Shown in pieces: positions 22,281-58,700 of a stretch of DNA of 64,000 nt (positions within the stretch are counted from its first letter, which is position 1; every line of letters begins with the position of its first letter). The notes under the pieces are model-generated. The model was not told where the DNA came from and ran no database searches. It saw only the letters and a list, made by a program, of their open reading frames with translations. Source of the stretch: Takakia lepidozioides (lineage: Eukaryota > Plantae > Bryophyta); assembly GCA_030704615.1 (NCBI GenBank), contig CM060732.1, forward strand, positions 10,664,001 to 10,728,000, given 5' to 3'. The translations under genes and the position numbers were made by a program.

Positions 22281-23458
22281 TGAGTCGGAAGACGGGGATT
22301 ACACAGGCTGCTGAACGGAAGGGGAACAGATGCGAATCCAGCGCCAGGAGCATTGGTGAAGATGAGACGACGCAAAGGGGATGTCGAAAGGTGGGAAGCT
22401 ACTCTCTCTCTCTCTCTTGGCGGCAAGTGAAGAAGAAGGCTCTCGCTCCGTGCCCGGGCTTCGAGCTCGGCCGCCATACCCGTGGCTTTGGAAACTTTGC
22501 AACCCCCGTCGGAAACCGATTTTTTCCTAACTAGATGCATGTGTTGAGTCATCCATCCTCGACTAGACGGTGGATGAACAATGCTAGCCAGGGGTTTCAT
22601 TCACATCCATTGTCTACTAGCGAGAAATTTCCACAGGCACCTTGTCTCAACCCCGTCTGCCTTTTGTCTGTGTAGATTTCTGCACAGTGCAGAGACCTGA
22701 GTTGGTAGCAAGAGTTGTGCAAATTGAGGTAATTTCTACCTCGACTGTGCTTCACAAATTTGATGTGCAACAAGGCTCACAATCCTAGGGGCATATATGT
22801 GTGATGCATTTACGCCTCCGGCATTCATCATGTACAAAAGATTGCTACTTCACTGTTTCTGAGTCTGCCGGAGACCGTGATATCATTAGGGTTCACAGCG
22901 GACCTTTCACATTAAGCATTTTACAAGGAATGTAATTACAAACCCTTAAGTGTGGGGTCAGCAGTGAGATATGGCCCTACCCATCTGAGATCTGCCACAA
23001 CCACATATGACATTCGATGGCTAACTTGCTTTAACAGCCGGCGAAAGTATGTAAGCTAATCAAATTCAGAGGTGTTACCTCCATGAATGAAGAAGAGAGC
23101 AGAGGAATTTGACAACTCTGCTGTCATCCTAAATGCAGTGATTTCTACAGGTAAAGAGGTGACCAAAGGAGAGCTGCGAATGCCCCCCAATATCTCACAT
23201 CATGATTCTAGGGGGAAAGCAGACCTCGCAACCTTTCACTCCAAGTTGGTTGGGAGGACACAAGTCGACAGACAATGACAAATGCAGGGGCCAATGACAA
23301 CCCAAGTACACCCATCACCTTTGTACTCGGTTGCTAGCTGTGAACTATCAACAAAAAGCACATCAAGGGCTAGTGATCAACTGATCAGACAGCAAGAGGG
23401 AAGGGAGATGAATGGAAGACAGTTTTACAAAAGCTTTATGCCCTCCTCCTGCATCTAG

Positions 23459-25880
23459 CTAAATTGTAACAAGACGGCTTAATGACTCAATGAGCCGCTT
23501 TAAATTGTGCCGTACTGTGGAGTCTCCCGTCAGTCCACTCACATCTTTGCTGATGCTCTGCACACTCCAACACCAATTTTCAGTACAACAGCAAAAGAAG
23601 CTGTGGCAGACTGACTCATGAAGTCCGCCATGAATTAATGATACCAAGGATATGGAATCTATCTACAATTGGTGACAAGTTCTCAGTCAGTAAGGAAGCA
23701 GCACAAAAGGGAACATCCGCACCTCAATGTGCTTCAGTGTTTTTGTCAGTGTGGACACCGACTCACGCAGCAGCTCCATATTCTCTGAGGTCAGCACTGA
23801 ATTATTCAGTTTCCTGCCACATTTTCACAACCATAAACTACAACGTAAGAGATCTACAAAGCAGCACCAACGCCACCCACATTCATACCGACTTTGGTCC
23901 TCAACTTCGCATGTCCTATGGCAGAGCTAAAAACGTCAGCCCAGATTTGCAACATTTCATGTGGACAAATGGACTGGGAAAGAGCAACAACGTGCTGCAA
24001 GACAACAATAGCAATAGAACATGCATCAGCATCAGAGGAAGTAAGTCGTGGGCAAAGAGGAAGACCACAACTACCATGGAAATATCACTCCATTGAAGGG
24101 GCTATACTTGGACACCTTACATTGGTAACGCCAATTAAGGGAAATCAGTAATGAGGAGAGCCTCAGTTGTACACCCTAAGCATCTTTACAACCTACTGTG
24201 AAAGAGGAGCTGTACGTACAAGGGTGTGTGACCAGTTCAGCATGCCAAAAACCTGGATGCCATGCTCACCTCAAATCATGGCCAGCTTCAGTAGCAACTC
24301 TGGTGAGGCTCTCAAGATCTTTCAACAGGTTTCCATCCTGTACTTCCTTGAGCAAGGGTTCAATATCACCCGCAATCAATTGAACCTGCCCAGAAAAGAA
24401 ATAAGAACAAATTATCCCACAATTCCCTTGCAACAAGGCAACCAGGGCCTCACATGGGCCTCACATGGGCCTCACTTGGAGTCACATTCCCAGAGACTTC
24501 TATCTGTCAAGGGAATGAGCAGGACGATTTTGACTTCTATTCCAACGCTGAAGGACGGCTCCCTTATGCACCTTCCCCCTCACTTTGGTGCTGGCAGATG
24601 CCCACACATGAAGAACCTAACAAACCACTTTCCAGGATATTCACTACATTGGCTCCAAGATTTTTTACTCTGGCTTTTATCACAAAACAACATACACAGA
24701 TCCAGACATTCAAATCAGATTATTATGAACCAGATGTATTAGCCAGAAAAGTGTCAGGGTGGGCCAAAGGGCAGAATGCAGTAGACAATCGGAGTACCTT
24801 GGCAAGAAGAGGTTTGGCATCTTCCACCACCATTCCTAGGCGTTCAGCCATGCCATACATTTTGGAGACACCCAGGCTATCAACTTGCTTCGCTATTTTG
24901 GTACAAATGCCAACTAGCTCATCCAGGCTCACTCCTTGTTCCCCCTTTATCCTTTCTCTGTCACAAACTATAAGGCCTTCCGCAGAGCAGCCTGAGTCCA
25001 GCGGCCCAACTGTGGGCTTGGGCAGAGGCAGGCGTGGCGTGACGTCGATGAGTGTCTCACTGATGAGGCCAGACTGGTTGACCTCAACCAGTGCGTTGCG
25101 AGGGATGACAATGCCTGAGTCCACAAGCTCCACGACCACATCGATGCGCTCCAGGCTGGGCCGCACCCCCACCACGTTGCCTACATCCACACCACGGATG
25201 CGCACCGGCGTGCCCACTGTGATGCCTTGTGCCTGTGCAAACTCAAACACCGCTTCATATGTCTTTGTCCGTGCTCGTATTTGAGTGCCCTTCACCCAAA
25301 CTAATGTGGTCGCCAACACGACCACCCCCGCCATTACAAAAAGGCCAACGCCACCCTCCCATATGCTGCGCTTTCCAAAACCAAAGTTGCTGAGTGGATT
25401 TACCAATTGATTCCAGAGGGACCTCGGGATCTCAAGAAACTTTCCCAGACCGTTCTTTCTTTTGGGAGATGTAGATGATGAAGATGAATCGCTGCTCTTG
25501 CTGCTCACCCTCACCCTCATGGCCCCGTGTATTTTACAAGGGTCATGCAATAGTTCAAATACAATCTTACCATCCAGACGGAGACTGCCATCACCAGTGC
25601 TAAAGTAGGTCTTGGGTCGCCTTCTCTGCTCAGGTCCGCAATTCCGCCCAGAAGGCTGAAGCCCGTTGAAAGAATGCGGCCCTCTGATAGTGTTTGGAAA
25701 GTGTAAAGTTTTAAATCCAGAACCCAAGATTTTCGATGGAACGGACGGAACATGGAGGCTTCCAGAAGACCATTCCCAATTCATCACCGTCGTGCCAGCA
25801 CCTTTTGAAGCCTGAGGTACGCATCCTGACACGCATCGGAGGCAAGGAGGCACATCCATGCTTGCCGCTCCTATTTCCAT
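23459..25880 (-). CDS. TGD2: TRIGALACTOSYLDIACYLGLYCEROL 2, MCE/MlaD-domain chloroplast lipid-transfer protein, 4 exons
   Basis: Transit-peptide-like N-terminus; PLSNFGFGKRSIWEGGVGLF plus a TM helix; MlaD motif GITVGTPVRIRGVDVGNV; NQSGLISETLIDVTP. Exons about 25880-24798, 24385-24269, 23813-23723 and 23557-23459 (SISKDVSGLTGD...LIESLSRLVTI*). Confidence 0.95.
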
Positions 25881-28033: not shown

Positions 28034-29997
28034 TTACATAAAATCAAACTCATCTATGTCATCGTAAGTTCCAGGAGCAAAACTATCATCATCCGGTTTG
28101 TCCACATGGAGCTGCTTCTTCTTTGGGCCTGTGAATCACACAACACCAATTCCAAATTACAACCATGTGAGCCCATCAACTCTAGGACCTAGCAGATTTG
28201 ATACACGCAAAAAATCAGGTCTCTATCCTTGGAGATAGCACTGCAACTGGCCTACCTGACTTTTTCTTCCCTGCAGTCGCATCCTTCTCAGCTTTCAACT
28301 TCTCATTGGCAGTAACAGTCATACTGGATGCCAATTCTTTTGCATCAGCCGCCTTCAGTGATGCAACTGAATGTCGCATCAAAGCCCTGAGCAGTGTCAT
28401 ATAATGGAAGCTTTTCTGCAACCAAGGAGAAGCCCTAGGGAATGAATTAGTTATGAAATCCACAGGTCACAGTAAGTTCTCAGCTCCTGGTTGCCCTGAC
28501 ATAACTGGTAGGAATTTGGTTAATCTAACTTGACTTTGAAAGAGGAGTACATTCATCATTACTGCTTAAAAGCCATAAGGTACAGCTAGAGCAACCCGCC
28601 ATGCTACCATCATTCGTCGCCATGCCCCACACGCCACTGATGGTTGCAGCGCGCAGGTCACAGCACAAAATGAACATTGATAGAATGTACTCACTAGACG
28701 TTGTTTGCCGTAGCCTTGAGGCCATTGACCCCGCGCCCAGTTTGAGCGGAACACAAAGGGACAGAACCTACCTCTGTCAGGGGTTGACGTCAGTAGTAAG
28801 GCTTACCTTGATAAAGAACATCGATCCGGGTTTTCCAGATATCCTCTAGAAATCCCTTCACACAAGCATCAATCTGCTGTGTGTGGTTTGCCCAATAACT
28901 AGGCCCCAGAAGGGCCTGAATGAACATTGATAGAATGTACTCATAAGTCGTTGTTTGCCGTAGCCTTGTGGCCATTGACCCCGCGCCCAGTCTGAGCGGA
29001 GCATAAAGGGACAGAACCTACCTCAGTCCGGGGCTGACGTCGGCAGTAAGACTTACATTGATAAAGGACATTGATTCGGGTTTTCCAGATATCCTCTAGA
29101 AATCCCTTCACACAAGCATCAATCTGCTGTGTGTGGTTTCCTCAGTAACTAGGCCCCAGAAGGGCCTGGGCTTTTGGCTCAGCCTCGAGACTTTCAAAGT
29201 TGGTAAACATAGATAAAAATGAACATTGATGGAGTAAGGTATTATGATTGCAAAGCTAAATAGCTGGTCTTGTGAGGATTGGAGACAGACTGACCTCAAA
29301 AGGTCTGATTTTTACAGCAAGTAGCTCAGCATATTCTAAAAACTCCTCTTCAGATTTGGGGATGAAGTCATCCAAACTGCGGACACCATCAGTCTTCTGC
29401 CCACCAAACAACTCTCTGGTAGATTGATAATCTGCCTCCTCCACCAACCTGTCACATTACAGCATTGTCCTTCTTAGATCCCACCCGCTATGTTGATTAA
29501 ACTAAGAGTCAATTCAGGACTTGTTACTAAAGCCGCATTTTGGCAAGCAAGATCTGACTGCCCCTTTATGTCTCACTAACCAAACTCGCCACTTTCTGAG
29601 AACTATTTGTAATGACCAGTGAGGTCAACAAACACACAAGAAGAGCGCACCTTTGTTGTCGAAGCTTCTCAGCCACAGGATCTGCAAGCCTGTCATCTTG
29701 AACAGCTACCTTCTTCCCTCTGGTGTCCACTGCCTTCTTCTTCTCTGCCTTGGGCTTTGTTGGTGCTGCCGCCTGAGCCCCATCAAAACACAAATGATCA
29801 GTCTCCCGCACATACATACCAAAGTCCTCACAGTCGAAAAATCAGAGGGCATCATTGAAAAACTTGGGGCCCTGACCTTCTCATCACAAACAGACCACAT
29901 GATTCGAGCCAGAAGAGGTAAAACAGCGAGAAAAATACCATCATCCACGACCAGGCAACAAACCCCAAACAGTGGACAAGAGTTATAGAACGTTATG

Positions 29998-30035
<38 letters not shown>

Positions 30036-33000
30036 GGTCTACCCACTCTTCAAACTGGCAAGGGCAAAGCTCTGGGGCTCACTAAATTTTCCACTGCAGA
30101 GGGGTCAACTCTGAGGTTAAGAAAACCATGCTTTGTCGCGTTATTAGACCTGCCTTGGAGTACGGATCTGCTATATGGGTTGATAACTCCAACCAGGCTA
30201 AGTCTCTAGAATCCATTCAAGTGGGGGTGCTTAAGGAGTGTAAGTCAGCATGCTCCAAAACAGCCAATGTGGCTGTTCGGGGTGAGTTTGGCATTCCGTC
30301 CTTAAGCTCCCAACGAGATGAATTCAAGGTCAGATGGTGGGGTCAGCTGCAACATATGCCCAACACCAGATATCCTAAGTTAATCGACTCTATATCTTGG
30401 CAACAGGACCGCCCTGTCAAACAGGCTAAGTCCTGGCAGAAGAGAGTAGAAGAGATCCTCAAGGACCTGGACCTGGATCCGCAAGTCTTGACCCTGCTGG
30501 ATAAATCTGACTTAGAGGCTGTAGTGTCCTCAGCCATGTCTGTTGCCATGAGATTGTCTGATGAAAATGAAGTTAGGCAGAAAACTTCCCTGAACTTGTT
30601 TCCAGTCTGTGACATGGGGGAGGACATCTTGGATGACCTCAAGGGTCTACCCGCTCTCGGCACTAGACTGAAATTTAAACTCAGGGCAGGAAGCCTACCT
30701 TTGAACAGCAAACAGAAGCAGAGAGGAAAGGGAGAGTGCAATTGCCCGTTGTGTGGGCAATCTGAAGACAGTATTCATTTTCTGATACACTGTCCGGGGT
30801 TCTCTCACCAAAGAGACGCTCTCTTCAAATCTATTACGGGTATTGTGCCTGTACCCCTGTTTACCAACTTTGAAAGTCTCGAGGCTGAGCCAAAAGCCCA
30901 GGCCCTCCTGAGCCCTAGCTTTTGGGCAAATCACACACAGCAGATTGATGCTTGTGTGAAGGGATTTCTAGAGGATATCTGGAAAACCCGGATTAATTCT
31001 ATATATGGAGGTAAGTCTTACTACCAACATCAGCCCCTGACAGAGGTAGGTTCTGTCCCTTTTGTTCCCGCTCAAACTGGGCGCGGGGTCAATGGCCACA
31101 AGGCTACGGCAAACAACGTCTTATGAGTACAATCTCTCGCTCTCCCTCTCCCTCTCCCTCTCTCTCTTTCTCTCTCTCTCTCAAGGGTCTACCCACTCTC
31201 GGCACTAGACTGAAATTTAAACTCAGGGCAGGAAGCCTACCTTTGAACAGCAAACAGAAGCAGAGAGGAAAGGGAGAGTGCAATTGCCCGCTGTGTGGGC
31301 AATCTGAAGACAGTATTCACTTTCTGATACACTGTCCGGGGTTCTCTCACCAAAGAGACGCTCTCTTCAATTCTATCAAGGGAATTGTGCCTGTACCCCT
31401 GTTTAACAACTTTGAAAGTCTCGAGGCTGAGCCAAAAGCCCAGGCCCTCCTGAGGCCTAGTTTTTGGGCAAATCACACACAGCAGATTGATGCTTGTGTG
31501 AAGGGATTTCTAGAGGATATCTGGAAAACCCGGATTAATTCTATATATGATGGTAAGTCACACTACCAACGTCAGCCCCTGACAGAGGTAGGTTCTGTCC
31601 CTTTTGTTCCCACTCAAACTGGGCGCGGGGTCAATGGCCACAAGGCTACGGCAAACAATGTCTTATGAGTACAATCTCTCTCTCTCTCTGCCCAAAGACT
31701 GTCCGAAGAAAATGAAGTTAGGCATAAAACTTCCCTGAACTTGTTCCCAGTCTGTGACATGGGCGAGTACCTTAAGGATGATCTCAAGGCCTACCTACCC
31801 TCGGAACAAAACTGAGTTTTAAACTCAGGGCGGGAAGCCTACCTCTGAAGAATAAACAGATGCAGAAAGGAAGAGGAGATTGTAATTAACCGATTTGCGG
31901 GCAATATCCATTTTCTGATACATTGTCCGGGATATTCTCACAATCAGAACATTGTCCCTGCACCTCTGTTCACCGGCTTTCAAAATCTTGGGGCTGAGCT
32001 CAAAGCTCCAAGTTGGGGTCTAAGTGCTGGGCAGCTTACACACAGCAAGTTGATGCTTGTGGGAAGGGCTTTCTAGAGGATATCTGGAAAACCCGAACTA
32101 GTTGTCTCTATCAAGGTAAGTCGCACTACCAGAGTGAGCCCCTCACAAAGGTAGTATCTGTTCCCTTTTGTTCCCACCCAAACTGGGCGCGGGGTCTATG
32201 GCCACAAGGCTACAGCAACAACGTCTTATAAGTACATCCTCTCATCACAGGGCAGGGCAGGTAGAAGAGATTTTCAAGTACCTGAATATTAGGTGGGAAG
32301 AACTGACCCAGCTAGACAAAACTGACTTGGAGGCTGAAGTGTCTAAGGCCATGTTGAAAGCATGAAGAATGTCCAAACAAAACGACGTTAGGCATAAAAC
32401 TTCCCTGAACTTATCCTGCACCTCTATTCCCCAACTTCCAAAATCTCAAGGCTGAGCCCTAAGCCCTGGCCCTATTGGGGTCTAATTGCTGGGCAGTTCA
32501 GCTGCTTGTGTGAAGGGATTTCTGAAGGATATCTAGAAGGCCAGAACCAATTATGTTTATACCAAGGTAAGTTACACTACTGGAGTGAGCCCCTGACAAA
32601 GGTAGTGTCTGTTCCCTCTTGTTCAGCCCAAACTGGGCCCGGGTTCTATGGCCATAAGGCTACGGCAAACAACATCTCATGAGTGTATCCTCTCATCTTC
32701 GACCAACATGAAGTCTGTTGATGAGGCTCTGTCTCATGTTCTTTAAGTACTTTCCAGACTTATGCTGGTTGTGCGTGGCACCATCAAGCTGAGTCAGCAT
32801 ATTGGATTTTAAGATAGCACATGTGGGAACTATTCGTTCCAAAATGGAGCTTGCCACCACTACATTTTCTCCTCATCCTCCTCTATAATCTCCCCCCTCT
32901 TTTCCTGTTCTCATCCACGAGCGTGGGTTCAAAACTACAAGGTTGTGTAACAAGCACATACAACTCAAAGTGACAGTCAACTTCAGCTTCAACTAATTTC

Positions 33001-33808
33001 TCATGGATGGATGCTGTGACCGACACGCCGATAAGATGTTTCTTATCTTTCTTATCGTGACATCCCACGGTAGTAAGCCAGCTGCCAGGCAGCAACATCA
33101 TGAAATGCACCAACACGAGCTGCTCGTGGAGTCTACGCACCCTATCATTCCTACACTCACTACAGACAGTAAGAATGAGAACATGAAGCTTGAAAAGATG
33201 TGTACCGGTTTAGAAACGTCCTCATCATCCCAGGACTGCTTCACATCTTCCTCGGCAACATCTTCATCTTCATCATCCCATTGACTCTTTGGTTGCTCCT
33301 TTACAACCACGGGAGGAGCTGGCACAAAATCCTCCGACTCTGTAGACACATCCCGTCACAACTTTGAGTGATGAATGAAGATAGGGTTCACTAGGAAACC
33401 CTAAAGTGGCTTCAACTTCTAGAGAAAACTATAGAACCATGTCTTTGTTCGGTAAGAGTGCACCACACGGCCACAGTCCGTTAGCTGCAAGGGCATGCAA
33501 AAACAAACCTTGCCATAATCAATTCAATTCTACAGAACACGACGGTCTCTCTATATACAGAATATGATGGTGACTCCCTACACAGGACGAATGAGCAGAG
33601 CACCACCAACTCTTAACCATTGCTTACAGACGTGCTTAAACAAACAAAGAAAACCCTCATGGAACTGCGCCCCTGAGATTAGCGCTCTCGAGGCATGAGG
33701 CTACAACCGCACAAGAGGAAAGCTGTGGTGTATGTCAGAAAGAGAAAAAAAAAACAATAATGAAACCAAAAGAGGTTAGCAGGATAAGGACCCACCCCAG
33801 TCATCCAT
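28034..33808 (-). CDS. EIF3J: Eukaryotic translation initiation factor 3 subunit J, 6 coding exons
   Basis: MDDW (33808-33796) / ESEDFVP...QWDDED...KQSWDDED / ...DPVAEKLRQQR / LVEEADYQSTRELFG...LDDFIPKSEEEFLEYAEL / KSFHYMTLLRALMR...ANEKLKAEK / KKKQLHVDKPDDD...YDDIDEFDFM* (TAA 28034-28036). Confidence 0.95.
28681..29210 (-). mobile_element. Two tandem 5'-truncated LINE 3' ends in an eIF3j intron
   Basis: Reverse complements of the 3' end seen at 30050-31132. The target aatgaacattgat occurs three times (about 28668, 28919 and 29218). Confidence 0.9.
30000..32700 (+). mobile_element. Head-to-tail array of four 5'-truncated non-LTR retrotransposons (RTE-X/CR1-group-like) separated by TC-rich tracts
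   Basis: Copy 1 (30050-31132) encodes the RT C-terminus IRPALEYGSAIW...TANVAVRGEFG and the zinc motif CPLCGQSEDSIHFLIHC. Copies 2 (31183-31674), 3 (about 31690-32245) and 4 (about 32246-32700) share the 3' end ...gtcttatgagtac followed by TC. Confidence 0.92.
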
Positions 33809-40200: not shown

Positions 40201-41725
40201 TGCAACATGGCGGTGTTATTATCATACATCTTTTGTATGACATAAGGTCCTTTCCATGGTGATTTAAGCTTAGAAACTTTAATCTTACCTTTCTTCTACA
40301 ACCAGAGAACCAAATCTCCCGTCTTAAAAGTCTTTAACTTGCCTTCATCAAACTGTTCCTTCCTCTTCATCTGAATTCTGGTCATGTTATCTGCTGCATT
40401 AGCACGTACTTCTTCCACATGGTATAATTCATGTTTCCTGACCTTAATTGAATCTTCCAATTCCATTCTCTTTCCCCATTCCATTCTCATGGTAGGTAAC
40501 AAGAATTCCACTGGAAGTAAAGCTTCCATACCATACACTAATTGGAATGGTGTATACTTAGTGATGACTTTATATGAAGTCCTGTATGACCACAAAGCTG
40601 TCAGCAGCTTTGTATCCCAATCTGTTCTGTTTGCATTGACTATCTTAGCCAAGATAGTACATAGTATTTTGTTGGTAGCCTCTGCCTGCCCATTACCCTG
40701 TGGGTAATACGTTGTACTCTTCCTATGCACAATCATGAACTCTTTAGTCAATAGATCAATGGTCTCATTAATGAAGTGACTTCCCTGATCACTGATAAAT
40801 TCCAAGGGACAGCCAAATCGTGTAAGTATGTTCTCATATAGGAACCTTGCTGTGGACTTAGCTGTGTTGTCCCTCAAAGCTTTAGCTTCCACCCACTTCG
40901 TAGTATAATCAGTGGCTGTAATTATGTACTTGTTCTGTGTATTCTTGGCCGGTGGGTTAATTGGTCCAACAAAGTCTAGTCCCCATTTCTGAAATGGTTT
41001 AGTAGGCATCATAGGATGCAAAGCCATCTTCCCATATCTCTGCAAAGGTCCTAGCCTCTGACATTCATCACAACTCTGACAATACTTGTGTACATCTTTG
41101 AACAAAGTAGGCCACTAGTAACCTGCAAGTAGTATCTTCTTACTGGTAGTCTCTTCTCCAAAATGTCCTCCAGCCACTCCTTTATGAACTTCCTCCAAAA
41201 CTTTATTTACTTCATGGTGGTACAAGCATCGTTTGAGTACTCCATCAGGTCCTAGCTTATACATTCTGCCTCCTACCATAGTATAAGGTAAAGCCTTGAT
41301 AGCGATTCTCTTCCTCTGCTCCTTACCATAACTAGATGGGCACTGACCATGAGTAAGGTAGTATCTGATTGGCCACTGCCAATCTAACCATTCATTTGCA
41401 CTTCCTTGCACCTCCATTACAAATAAACTCGCATCAGGTAATTGATCGTCTACTCCTGTGGCGGCCTCTCCTGTTGTTAGTCGTGACAAGTGATCTGCCA
41501 CAAGATGCAAACGGCCAGGCTTGTAAACAACTTCGAACTCAAACTCGTGCAAGATTATTAACCACCTTGCTATCCTTCCACTTATCAAAGGTTTGTTCAC
41601 CAGATATATTAGAGCCTGGTGATCCACATAAAACAAAAACTTTCTTCCCAATAGGTAATGCCTGAATTTCTTGACTGCATAAATCATTGCCAGTGCTTCT
41701 CTTTCAGTTGTGCTATAGTTCCTGT
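37236..41725 (-). mobile_element. Non-chromovirus Ty3/Gypsy 3' half: RNase H, H2C2, integrase, 30-bp minisatellite and an extra 3' coiled-coil ORF
   Basis: RNYSTTEREALAMIYAVKKFRHYL; HKGVAGGHFG...CQSCDECQR; WGLDFVGPINPP...TDYTTKWVEA...SDQGSHF...PQGNGQAE; WKGPY. Broken ORFs at 39294-37236 have heptad-rich segments. Confidence 0.9.
39725..40005 (-). repeat. 30-bp minisatellite reading (RRDTAYHSPS)n
   Basis: tgtgataggctgtgtcgcgccgtgatgggc, about 5 near-perfect and several degenerate copies. Related to the cacagcc repeats at 43548-43775. Confidence 0.9.
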
Positions 41726-41905
41726 ACTTAGCCTTGTTGGAGTTATCAACCCATATTGCAGATCCGTACTCCAAGGCAGGTCTAATAACGCGACAAAGCA
41801 TGGTTTTCTTAACCTCAGAGTTGACCCCTCTGCAGTGGAAAAATTTAGTGAGCCCCAGAGCTTTGCCCTTGCCAGTTTGAACAACTTTCCAGATATGTTG
41901 TGCCC
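41726..41905 (-). mobile_element. Internal LINE RT fragment of the same family as 30050-31132
   Basis: Near-identical to 30050-30205 (QTGKGKALGLTKFFHCRGVNSEVKKTMLCRVIRPALEYGSAIWVDNSN). Confidence 0.9.
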
Positions 41906-55748: not shown

Positions 55749-58700
55749 TCATGGAGGTAGCTGTGTCAATGTCCACGTCTCATTTTGAAGGAGTGAGTTA
55801 TACTCCGCCTGCATTGCCTCTTGCCACTTGGTATGATCTGGTGAAGAAATGGCCTCTTCATACGTATTTGGATCATCAAGAGACTCAATGGTCTCAGTGT
55901 TTCCTGCAAAATCAGTTTCAGCATAATAGAGGAAATCGCCGAACCGTTGAGGTGGCCCTGCATTTCGCTGTGGTCTGACTCTCACACGAGCTTCGTAAAA
56001 AATGATTTGACCGTTGGCATCTGGATTTTCCACATAATCTCTGCTCTCTACTGCTCCCGAGCTCTGTGATCCATCAATTGGTTCTATAGGCTGTGCCACA
56101 TTCTGTTGCCCTTCTGGCTGAACTGGATGTGTTGATGCATTTGAGGCAGGACCTAAGGCAAGTAGTATGATAGAGCTCTGATTGCTCTGTTGAGATTCCT
56201 TGAACGCTATGTTGGTTGCATCATCGTGAAACAAGACATCTCTGCTTACAATCACCTCAAGCGTTTTTCTGTGTCCTAAAGCCTATAAGCTTTACTCTGG
56301 ATGTCATAGCCTAGGAAGAGGCACTTTCTGCTTTTCTATCCAACTGCTTACGCAGCTGCGCGGGGATGTGTGCATAGGCTGTATCTGCGCTTACAAGCAG
56401 AGACATAACTTGTTTATACAGCAACAGCCGGAAAAGTGATGTTCTTAATCGCTTCAAGGAGTTATGGAACATCTCCAAGCATGCTACCGGAAACGAGATA
56501 ATGAAGCTTCACACCGATCGAGGGACTGAATATGTGAACAAGGCATTTGCCGATTTTCAATCAGCTACTTGGGAATCACGCATGAGCTGACAGCAACGTA
56601 CACCCCTGAACAAAATGGTTATGCACAAAGAGACAACCGAAGCATTATCGAAATGGTTAGGACTATGCTCCACGACAAGCAAATGTTGCTCAACTTTTGG
56701 GGTGAAGCGTATAGGGCCCACCCCAGACAGGGGGCAGTAGCCGTAAAGTGAAATGGCTCCTAGTTACGTGGGCTTCGGCCGGAATCTTCTCTCTCTCTGG
56801 GGTGAAGCAGTAATGACGGCAGCATATTTGCTCAACCGAATTGGCACTCTTTCCTTAGGGTATGCAACCCCATTGAAGGCCTGGAATAATAAGCGGCCAG
56901 ATGTGGCACATTTACGTGCAAAGGGTTGTAGCAGGGCCACTGGTTTGGAGCAGGAGCTGGAAGTATGCAAGGAAAAGGTGGCTCTGCTTACACGTGATAA
57001 TCATAATCTGCAAGAAGAGCTGACTGAAGCTTATCGTGTCAAGTTATTGTCAGAAATTTAATGAATACTTGCCTACAAATGGACTAAGCATCATACAAGC
57101 AGCTAGGCCCTTAAATAGTGTGCTGAAGCACTACCCTTACTCATCATAATTGTCCTTCTGGAAAAACTTTCAATCAGATCGTATGAGGGACAAGAGTTGA
57201 TGGCATACCAATGTCTCTGCAATGATTGAGCTGGTTCAAGGCAGCTGGAGCTCGTTGCTCATAATCCCTTGTCCTGATGCATTTCAGTTTCCAAGCATCT
57301 TCAGTAGAGATGATCGACACAAGATTGCGGCTCAGGTCAGGTACAAAGAGTACTCGGTTCAAAATGCCTCTTATCCAAATCCCGTCGACATAAGACTCTA
57401 TTTCTATGTCTCCAACACCTCTAACCCAAACCCGAAGGTCCGTTGCGACTTTAACTCCCCAGACCCAGAGACAACAGTTTAAAGTTAGCATACCAATCGC
57501 GATGGAATGTCATGTGCTCCCGATGCCCCGGAGTCGGCAATCCACATTTCTTCTTGATCACTGTGCGTGATGTACGCATGACTGCTGTATCGTGCTGTTG
57601 TAAGCACGAGTCTGAGTATTCTCTTGTGAGGCTACAAGTTCCAACTCCTCCACTGCTTCGTGTATCTCTGATATAACTGGTAATGCAAAACTCCATTGGC
57701 CATTACTTGCTGTTGCATCACTCCCACTGTCACTTGCAGTATGGTCGCAAGAAACGCATCGCTCTCCATGACGTCGGTTTCTATTACATTAGCTTGGCTG
57801 CCTGGCTTACGCTTACAGTCCTTCTTGCAGCCTTTGATTGAGCAAGGATCCTCCGTGCATTCCTTAGACCAGTGTCCCCAGCAATGATACAAGTTGCACT
57901 GACTGCTCTTTTTCAATTCAGCTATTCTTCGATTTCTTGTCTTCCTTTGCTCAGGAGTATATTCTCGTTTGCTATAGCTCCCACTCTGACTAGCACTAGG
58001 GCTATAACTGGCAGTGCGACCTGTGCTATGGCCATGACTCCCACTATGGCTGCCAGTCTTGCCTGAACTTTTAGGCTTCCCACTACTGGCGAAGAACGCC
58101 TTATCTGCAAGATCCTGGCCTACTCCTCTCTCCTTCTCGAGATTCTCCTTCTTTAATAAATGGTCCTGCAGCTTATTGAGTGTTTGCTCTGCCTTTGGTA
58201 CGCTGTCCAAGGCATAGAGAAGATTGTCGAAGCTAGGTGGAAGTCCACTTACGATCTTAGATATGATCGCTCTTTCGTCCATGGACGTCCAGCATCTCTG
58301 CCCTAGTATGTAGCAACGTCATCTCCTGGCTGCATGTTCACCCTGTACCATCTCATCTAAAGATGATGTACGATATCATCTGTTGCTTGCTCGTTAACTT
58401 GGATCAGTAATCCCCACATGTCTGCTGCTGTTTCATAATGCATCACATGCTGCAAATGCTTCTCATCAATGGCCTGAATCAGAATAACAATTGCCTGTGT
58501 ATTCTTATCATCCCATACCTTTACTGCCTGACTGTTTGCAGGGTCAGGTCGCTTATCCTTTCCACACAGTACATCCCACAGACCTGTAGATGTATTCCAT
58601 TTGGAACCCCAAACTGGAAATCCCTCACCAGTATACTTTCGTATGCCTATTCCTTCTTTCTCGCCACCGCTTGCCATAGCTGAATCGTAACAATACTTAA

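Follow-up and report, generated by a model that had tools for sequence, protein, structure and literature searches.

A four-copy stack of truncated LINE fragments in an eIF3j intron of Takakia lepidozioides points to repeated insertion at a re-used site

Why would four truncated copies of one retrotransposon family stand head to tail inside an intron of a housekeeping gene? The question is posed by a 64,000-nucleotide (nt) stretch of the Takakia lepidozioides genome (GenBank assembly GCA_030704615.1, contig CM060732.1, positions 10,664,001 to 10,728,000; hereafter the window, in whose own coordinates all features are given). Between 30050 and 32687 of its plus strand, an intron of the eIF3j gene contains four 3' fragments of a single long interspersed nuclear element (LINE) family. 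An earlier note, made from the sequence alone, had explained them by successive insertions into one (TC)n site that piled up in chronological order. In the reading that we prefer and hold to be probable, the array was built in four independent rounds of target-primed reverse transcription by a single LINE family, probably of the apurinic/apyrimidinic endonuclease (APE) type, that re-used one site. How that site was recognised, and how strictly the array preserves the order of its assembly, are separate matters on which the evidence is uneven.

The four copies, c1 to c4 in 5' to 3' order, have the boundaries and the differing 5' truncations first ascribed to them, and they differ in their state of decay as the same proposal held. 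c1 (30050-31131) is a 1082-nt fragment that covers the C-terminal region beyond the reverse transcriptase (RT) domain, with a Cx2Cx7Hx4C knuckle; 346 codons are open at 30086-31126, and a lone stop stands at 30083-30085. c2 (31183-31673; 491 nt) is 96.5% identical to c1, and all of its 162 codons are open. The other two copies are eroded: c3 (31690-32236) has five frameshifting indels and one stop, and 24 nt are deleted from it; c4 (about 32247-32687), the most decayed fragment of the array, is missing ~250 nt of its interior and is broken by four frameshifts and three stops. Disabling lesions thus number six in c3 and at least seven in c4. Identity to c1 is 81-82% for c3 and ~76-78% for c4, and c3 and c4 are 84% identical to each other. 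In c1 coordinates, the copies begin at positions 1 (c1), 592 (c2), ~496 (c3) and ~385 (c4). Their 3' ends are alike: a TGA or TAA stop, a GTACA-like pentamer (GTGTA in c4) and one A or T. The 3' untranslated region (UTR) is therefore 6 nt long, and no copy in the window has a poly(A) tail. TC-rich sequence follows, in agreement with the ending first reported: TCTCTC and so on after c1 and c2, and CCTCTCATC after c3 and c4.

A second stack lies 0.8 kb from the array, on the minus strand. Its two members, rB (28936-29209; 274 nt) and rA (28686-28918; 233 nt), are 3' fragments of the same family that are 91% identical to each other and begin at c1 positions 809 and 850, respectively; the six copies in the window have six different 5' ends and one common, complete 3' end. 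Downstream of both rB and rA the sequence reads TCTATCAATG. The span 28667-29233 contains three copies of a non-microsatellite target of 16-18 nt, TCYATCAATGTTCATT(TT), that bracket rB and rA (29233-29216, 28934-28919 and 28684-28667); the outer two end in TTTT and the middle one in TT, abutting the 5' end of rA.

What ties neighbouring copies to separate insertions? The junction between c1 and c2 is the clearest case. Upstream of c1 lies a pure (CT)16.5 tract (30000-30032; 100% matches in TRF), followed by a 17-mer (30033-30049) that repeats the start of c2 (31183-31199) exactly; with the preceding TC run included, the repeat grows to 48 nt, 46 of which match (96%; 30002-30049 versus 31152-31199). 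The version of the 17-mer that is internal to c1 (30641-30657) has G where both of these copies have A, which confirms the earlier view that the duplicate came from c2 and not from c1. Because the 17-mer before c1 has this A of c2 and the TC run found at the 5' junction of c2, c1 was inserted after c2; this step in the history of the array is firm. c1 would have landed in the TC run ahead of c2, where a staggered cut would have reached 17 nt into c2. The 17-mer before c1 is the upstream copy of the resulting target site duplication, and the 3' part of the impure, 51-nt TC-rich tract that separates c1 from c2 (31132-31182) belongs to the downstream copy.

The remaining junctions fit the same scheme less fully. 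The gap between c2 and c3 is A + (TC)7.5 (31674-31689), probably the downstream copy of an all-TC target duplication of c2, a copy flanked by TC runs of 14-15 nt. After c3 stands the 10-mer TCCTCTCATC (32237-32246), and the same 10-mer recurs after c4 (32688-32697); the common ending of these two copies, also remarked earlier, is either the target duplication of c4 or a shared end. Across the two stacks, target duplications measure 10, 16-18 and 17-48 nt, and they are found inside the junctions: the TC run plus 17-mer between c1 and c2, the 10-mer between c3 and c4, and the 16-nt target between rB and rA.

Separate insertions in one site are well supported over local duplication because three things coincide: distinct truncations, nested target duplications and a ratio of nonsynonymous to synonymous change (dN/dS) below 1 between neighbours. 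By the Nei-Gojobori method, dN/dS is 0.38 for c1 and c2 (491 nt), 0.42 for c3 and c4, and 0.31 for rA and rB (p = 0.005-0.024); values below 1 are expected if neighbours stem from different active sources, but not if one of them is a decaying DNA copy. Each event would have been truncated at its own 5' point and would have duplicated 9 to ~18 nt or more of the target. Usable target copies would then remain on both flanks of the insert, leaving the site open to repeat insertion, and the family 3' end (6 nt past the stop, GTACA plus A or T) would each time be joined ahead of a pyrimidine motif, YCT(C/A)TC. The same process would account for the rB/rA stack at its non-microsatellite site in the neighbouring intron.

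Several observations weigh against this reading. The dN/dS signal is modest and ignores transition bias, and a test on third codon positions of neighbours is not significant (p = 0.08-0.22). These comparisons cover only the six copies of the window; within this set each adjacent pair (c1/c2, c3/c4 and rA/rB) is mutually closest, which local duplication predicts as well. At the junctions, neither an end without a tail nor the 48-nt duplication accounts for the first 20 or more TC-rich nt past c1 (31132-31151), and an upstream copy of the 10-mer TCCTCTCATC is not recognisable at c3. Finally, the target motif rests on about four independent sites, two of which are non-microsatellite.

If one site was used again and again, what made it a target? 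The six nt past the 6-nt end read TCTCTC in two copies, CCTCTC in two and TCTATC in two, from which we infer a preference for YCT(C/A)TC. The window does not support the view that a (TC)n microsatellite is strictly required. Of the single (TC)n site originally envisaged, what stands is that c1 and c2 lie between TC runs. They are the only copies flanked by such runs on both sides: the sites of c3/c4 (CCTCTCATC) and of rA/rB (TCYATCAATGTTCATT) are not microsatellites, and the two other pure TC runs of at least 14 nt in the window (22402-22417 on the plus strand and 27802-27789 on the minus strand) have no adjoining copy. The window has ~117 YCTMTC tracts; all six copies sit in two of them, and ~115 are without a copy. 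Under equal use of the tracts, six insertions in two would have a probability of ~1.6e-7, a figure to be read with the motif's post hoc definition from the same copies in mind. Re-use of these sites is far beyond chance, and stronger than a short motif explains. Either the sites are intrinsically hot, it appears, or a copy already in place makes a further insertion more likely.

Could the TC sequence come from the element and not from the target? An RNA that ended in a short, variable (UC)n tail, lengthened by RT slippage, would allow new copies to prime on the tails of resident ones, comparable to L1 on A-rich tails. The TC-rich stretch after c1 that lies outside the duplication speaks for such a tail, and so do the short simple repeats in which green-algal RTEX and flowering-plant RTE LINEs end (PMC3747384, Table 3). 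Like the copies described here, those elements lack poly(A) and have a very short 3' UTR and a simple-repeat-like end; however, the repeats listed for them are (CA)n, (CAA)n, (TTG)n and others, none of them (TC)n, and the likeness is one of the 3' end only. Elsewhere in the window, an ~88-nt retroposed insert interrupts a copia integrase reading frame (~56710-56798, plus strand); its last bases are AATCT plus a TC run, and a 10-nt duplication, GGGGTGAAGC, stands on either side (56699-56708 and 56799-56808). Since the target of this insert is non-TC, its TC run is a tail: TC tails do occur in this genome, and some of the TC stretch behind c1 may be of this kind. The insert, however, has no BLAST similarity to the LINE family. 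Furthermore, rA, rB, c3 and c4 have no TC repeat past the target-like 6-9 nt, so a long tail is not obligatory, and c1 landed upstream of c2, not in the tail of c2. Homing to resident tails is thus a possible but rather unlikely account of the stacks.

Re-use of one target by separate insertions, the reading preferred here, leaves the question of order: how far does the array record its own assembly? In addition to the insertion of c1 after c2, it is very likely that the intact c2 was inserted after the decayed c3; c3 and c4 would have come first, then c2 in the TC run ahead of c3, then c1. c3 and c4 have 14 derived sites in common, found only in these two, and by this signature belong to a different, older subfamily than c1 and c2. 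As a consequence, subfamily distance and time of decay both enter into the divergence from c1 along the array. The initial observation that divergence rises downstream is accurate in that identity to c1 falls from 96.5% to ~76-78%, but the gradient is not simply one of decay time. Between c3 and c4, the numbers of private changes (15 and 24) do not differ significantly (p = 0.10). The idea of a chronological array therefore holds for c1 after c2 and for an intact c2 upstream of decayed c3 and c4, but not for c3 relative to c4. With three neighbour comparisons only, a monotonic order of four copies would arise by chance about once in 12 cases. The array is consistent with a youngest-upstream order; its polarity is unproven, and a strict oldest-to-youngest order is only weakly supported.

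A stricter scheme would make the polarity a rule. If the endonuclease needed a constant upstream flank plus TC, only the 5'-most target would be competent; if, in addition, the site were made ~100-fold more attractive than others with this short motif, either by a copy already resident or by the place where a LINE-end-like flank meets TC, the array would grow at its 5' edge only and would form a strict chronological record. The nested target duplication that places c1 after c2, the position of the intact c2 upstream of decayed c3 and c4, and the excess of private changes in c4 (24 versus 15 in c3) are what such a rule would produce, and the upstream flank ends in an 11-mer (29989-29999) that resembles the LINE 3' end. 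Arguing the other way are the small number of comparisons, with their chance expectation of ~1/12 and the p of 0.10 for c3 versus c4, and the mechanism itself: a target duplication gives the insert a restored site on either side, which does not force growth at the 5' edge. Nor are the upstream flanks of the two stacks related. In the rB/rA stack, moreover, the outer targets have two extra T, and private changes number 12 in rB versus 7 in rA (p = 0.18), a weak hint that rB may have been inserted first, with an 18-nt duplication, and rA then into the downstream target copy, with a 16-nt one; the younger copy would be on the 3' side, and the stack weakly points to the opposite polarity. Given this hint, the regenerated targets and the mere three comparisons, invariable growth at the 5' edge is not established, and we regard the stricter scheme as unlikely.

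The 11-mer itself had been put forward as a minimal further 3' end, but this candidate was rejected. To match the LINE end it needs a 2-nt gap, and the terminal TACA is missing; its local score of 8 is equalled by 336 of 20,000 random 20-mers from the window (1.7%; p ~0.017); a fifth copy at this place is not established.

The copies could also descend from one or two original insertions by tandem duplication at the DNA level or by unequal crossing-over, followed by decay and deletions. That adjacent copies are each other's nearest relatives would follow naturally, and TRF indeed describes rA/rB as a 250-nt tandem repeat of 2.0 copies. Yet in each pair one copy has 5' sequence that its neighbour lacks, and this extra sequence abuts the junction exactly: 590 nt in c1 relative to c2, ~110 nt in c4 relative to c3, and 41 nt in rB relative to rA. 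The nested duplication of the 17-mer requires insertion, and neighbour dN/dS values of 0.3-0.5 are likewise unfavourable; an origin by local duplication is improbable. The claim of separate retrotranspositions into one site, made at the outset from the different 5' ends and from a target duplication of c1 that takes in the first 17 nt of c2, withstands this comparison. Still less credible is a one-step concatemer, in which RT jumps between RNA ends during a single integration and lays down two or more head-to-tail copies at once: non-LTR reverse transcriptases can jump templates end to end, as reported for R2, and c1 and c2 are both young, but target duplications lie inside the junctions (16 nt in rB/rA and at least 17 nt in c1/c2) and the decay of c2 differs greatly from that of c3.

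What kind of LINE makes such insertions? c1 begins just 3' of the RT domain, and no copy in the window extends into that domain. The 346-residue c1 protein, whose knuckle gives a weak zf-RVT match, has relatives at ~30% identity that are 1300-1480 residues long and combine PF03372 (Exo_endo_phos) with PF00078 (RVT_1), some of them also with PF13966 (zf-RVT). The closest solved structure to the RT of these relatives is L1 ORF2p. Comparisons with the PDB and the Atlas say nothing finer than "LINE", the Atlas neighbours being mostly molluscan and arthropod proteins, and a homologous-protein search with the family gave one weak match. The relatives keep the extreme C-terminal motif of c1 just ahead of the stop: G-V/A-N/Y-G-x-x-x-x-A, with the stop within ~6 codons, is retained in relatives P0002-P0014 at only ~30% overall identity. 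To judge from this conservation, the coding 3' terminus may double as a recognition site for RT. A 3' RNA hairpin was considered and rejected: a 5-bp stem, UGGCC/GGCUA, can be drawn in six of six copies, but it has no covariation, and fold z-scores range from -0.3 to +1.3.

Beyond the window, a 23-nt pattern of the 3' end had no match in metagenome contigs, and a search for related loci found none in viral or prokaryotic genome contigs and one unrelated-looking partial locus (L001) in metagenomes. The latter (L001:273-1199) contains a 308-residue open reading frame (ORF); over its second half, identity to the knuckle region of c1 is 41%. Upstream it has an inserted His-Ser/Gln run and an internal duplication, and no LINE 3' end can be recognised. 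The locus may represent a fragment that has decayed, or been recruited, in another organism.

Within the window, a further trace of the family is a 155-nt piece on the minus strand (41726-41880; ORF 41115-41801) that is 98% identical to c1. It starts at the same base as c1 (TCAAACTGG), and its upstream flank is unrelated to that of c1; the match stops at c1 positions 30203/30204, just inside TCTCTAGA, and past this break the reading frame carries on as a Ty3/gypsy RNase H-integrase ORF (PF17917). Nothing more of this LINE copy is in the window. The 5' end that the piece and c1 have in common may mark a short subfamily or a site where RT stops, or it may stem from a chimeric retrocopy.

The host gene bears out the original description of a housekeeping intron. 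Minus-strand exons at 33098-33349 (the 5' coding exon; E = 6.4e-4) and 29256-29447 (E = 6.6e-10), each searched singly, match the eIF3 subunit J family (PF08597), and the PDB match of the exon-sized minus-strand ORFs is human eIF3j. The array lies antisense to the gene, between the exon at 33098-33349 and an exon near 29650-29790; it makes up ~2.7 kb of this ~3.3-kb intron and disrupts no exon. rB and rA are in the next intron, in sense orientation. The two stacks thus form inverted repeats of 240-281 nt with 88% complementarity (28679-29209 versus 30858-31680), with two eIF3j exons between them; judging by this complementarity, they could pair in the pre-mRNA and form double-stranded RNA or a substrate for back-splicing. 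About 3 kb from eIF3j, a single long minus-strand ORF (24723-25880) has an MlaD domain (PF02470, E = 1e-15) and matches only bacterial homologues in the PDB; we take it to be a TGD2-type chloroplast lipid-transport protein.

How does the locus compare with known systems? LINEs that target microsatellites have been described in fish and insects, among them the (TC)n-specific Kibi of teleosts, which belongs to the Tx1 group, and Koshi, Waldo, Mino and Dong (PMC3812793). Kibi, of the APE type to which the present family probably belongs, also joins its 3' end to sequence that contains TC, and its target is regenerated too; here, in contrast, two of four target contexts are non-microsatellite, the other TC runs of the window are empty, and the host is a land plant. 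Closer in architecture are the tandem non-LTR dimers of Drosophila (jockey, DMRT1B and R1 arrays), for which the combination of a junction target duplication and distinct 5' truncations is accepted as evidence of double insertion (McGurk and Barbash 2018, PMC5932611). They have the same head-to-tail copies, junction duplications and distinct truncations, but are mostly dimers, whereas the stack in T. lepidozioides has four copies of two subfamily ages and a second stack 0.8 kb away. Larger pile-ups, in which LINE copies, often 5'-truncated, are gathered by repeated insertion as they are here, form the HeT-A/TART arrays of Drosophila telomeres and the Zepp clusters of Chlorella and Coccomyxa (PMC5932611; PMC3446292). 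The polarity of HeT-A/TART arrays comes from addition at a free chromosome end, while the present site is internal and intronic, with no evident structural cause of polarity; Zepp differs in that its copies nest in each other. In the literature searched, no description of such LINE stacks in a land plant was found.

Repeated insertion of this kind is known already from LINEs of fish and insects and from the Drosophila dimers; the window adds a clean example and one well-resolved order, not a new principle. Its practical value lies in the nested target duplications, which give the relative order of insertions without a molecular clock. If the habit is genome-wide, much of the activity of this LINE in a non-seed land plant is confined to short TC motifs and to sites of earlier insertions, which would explain the swelling of introns in essential genes such as eIF3j. 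If growth at the 5' edge by homing, here judged unlikely, were true, the family would be a land-plant LINE with true homing, and its intronic arrays would be local time series of subfamily succession.

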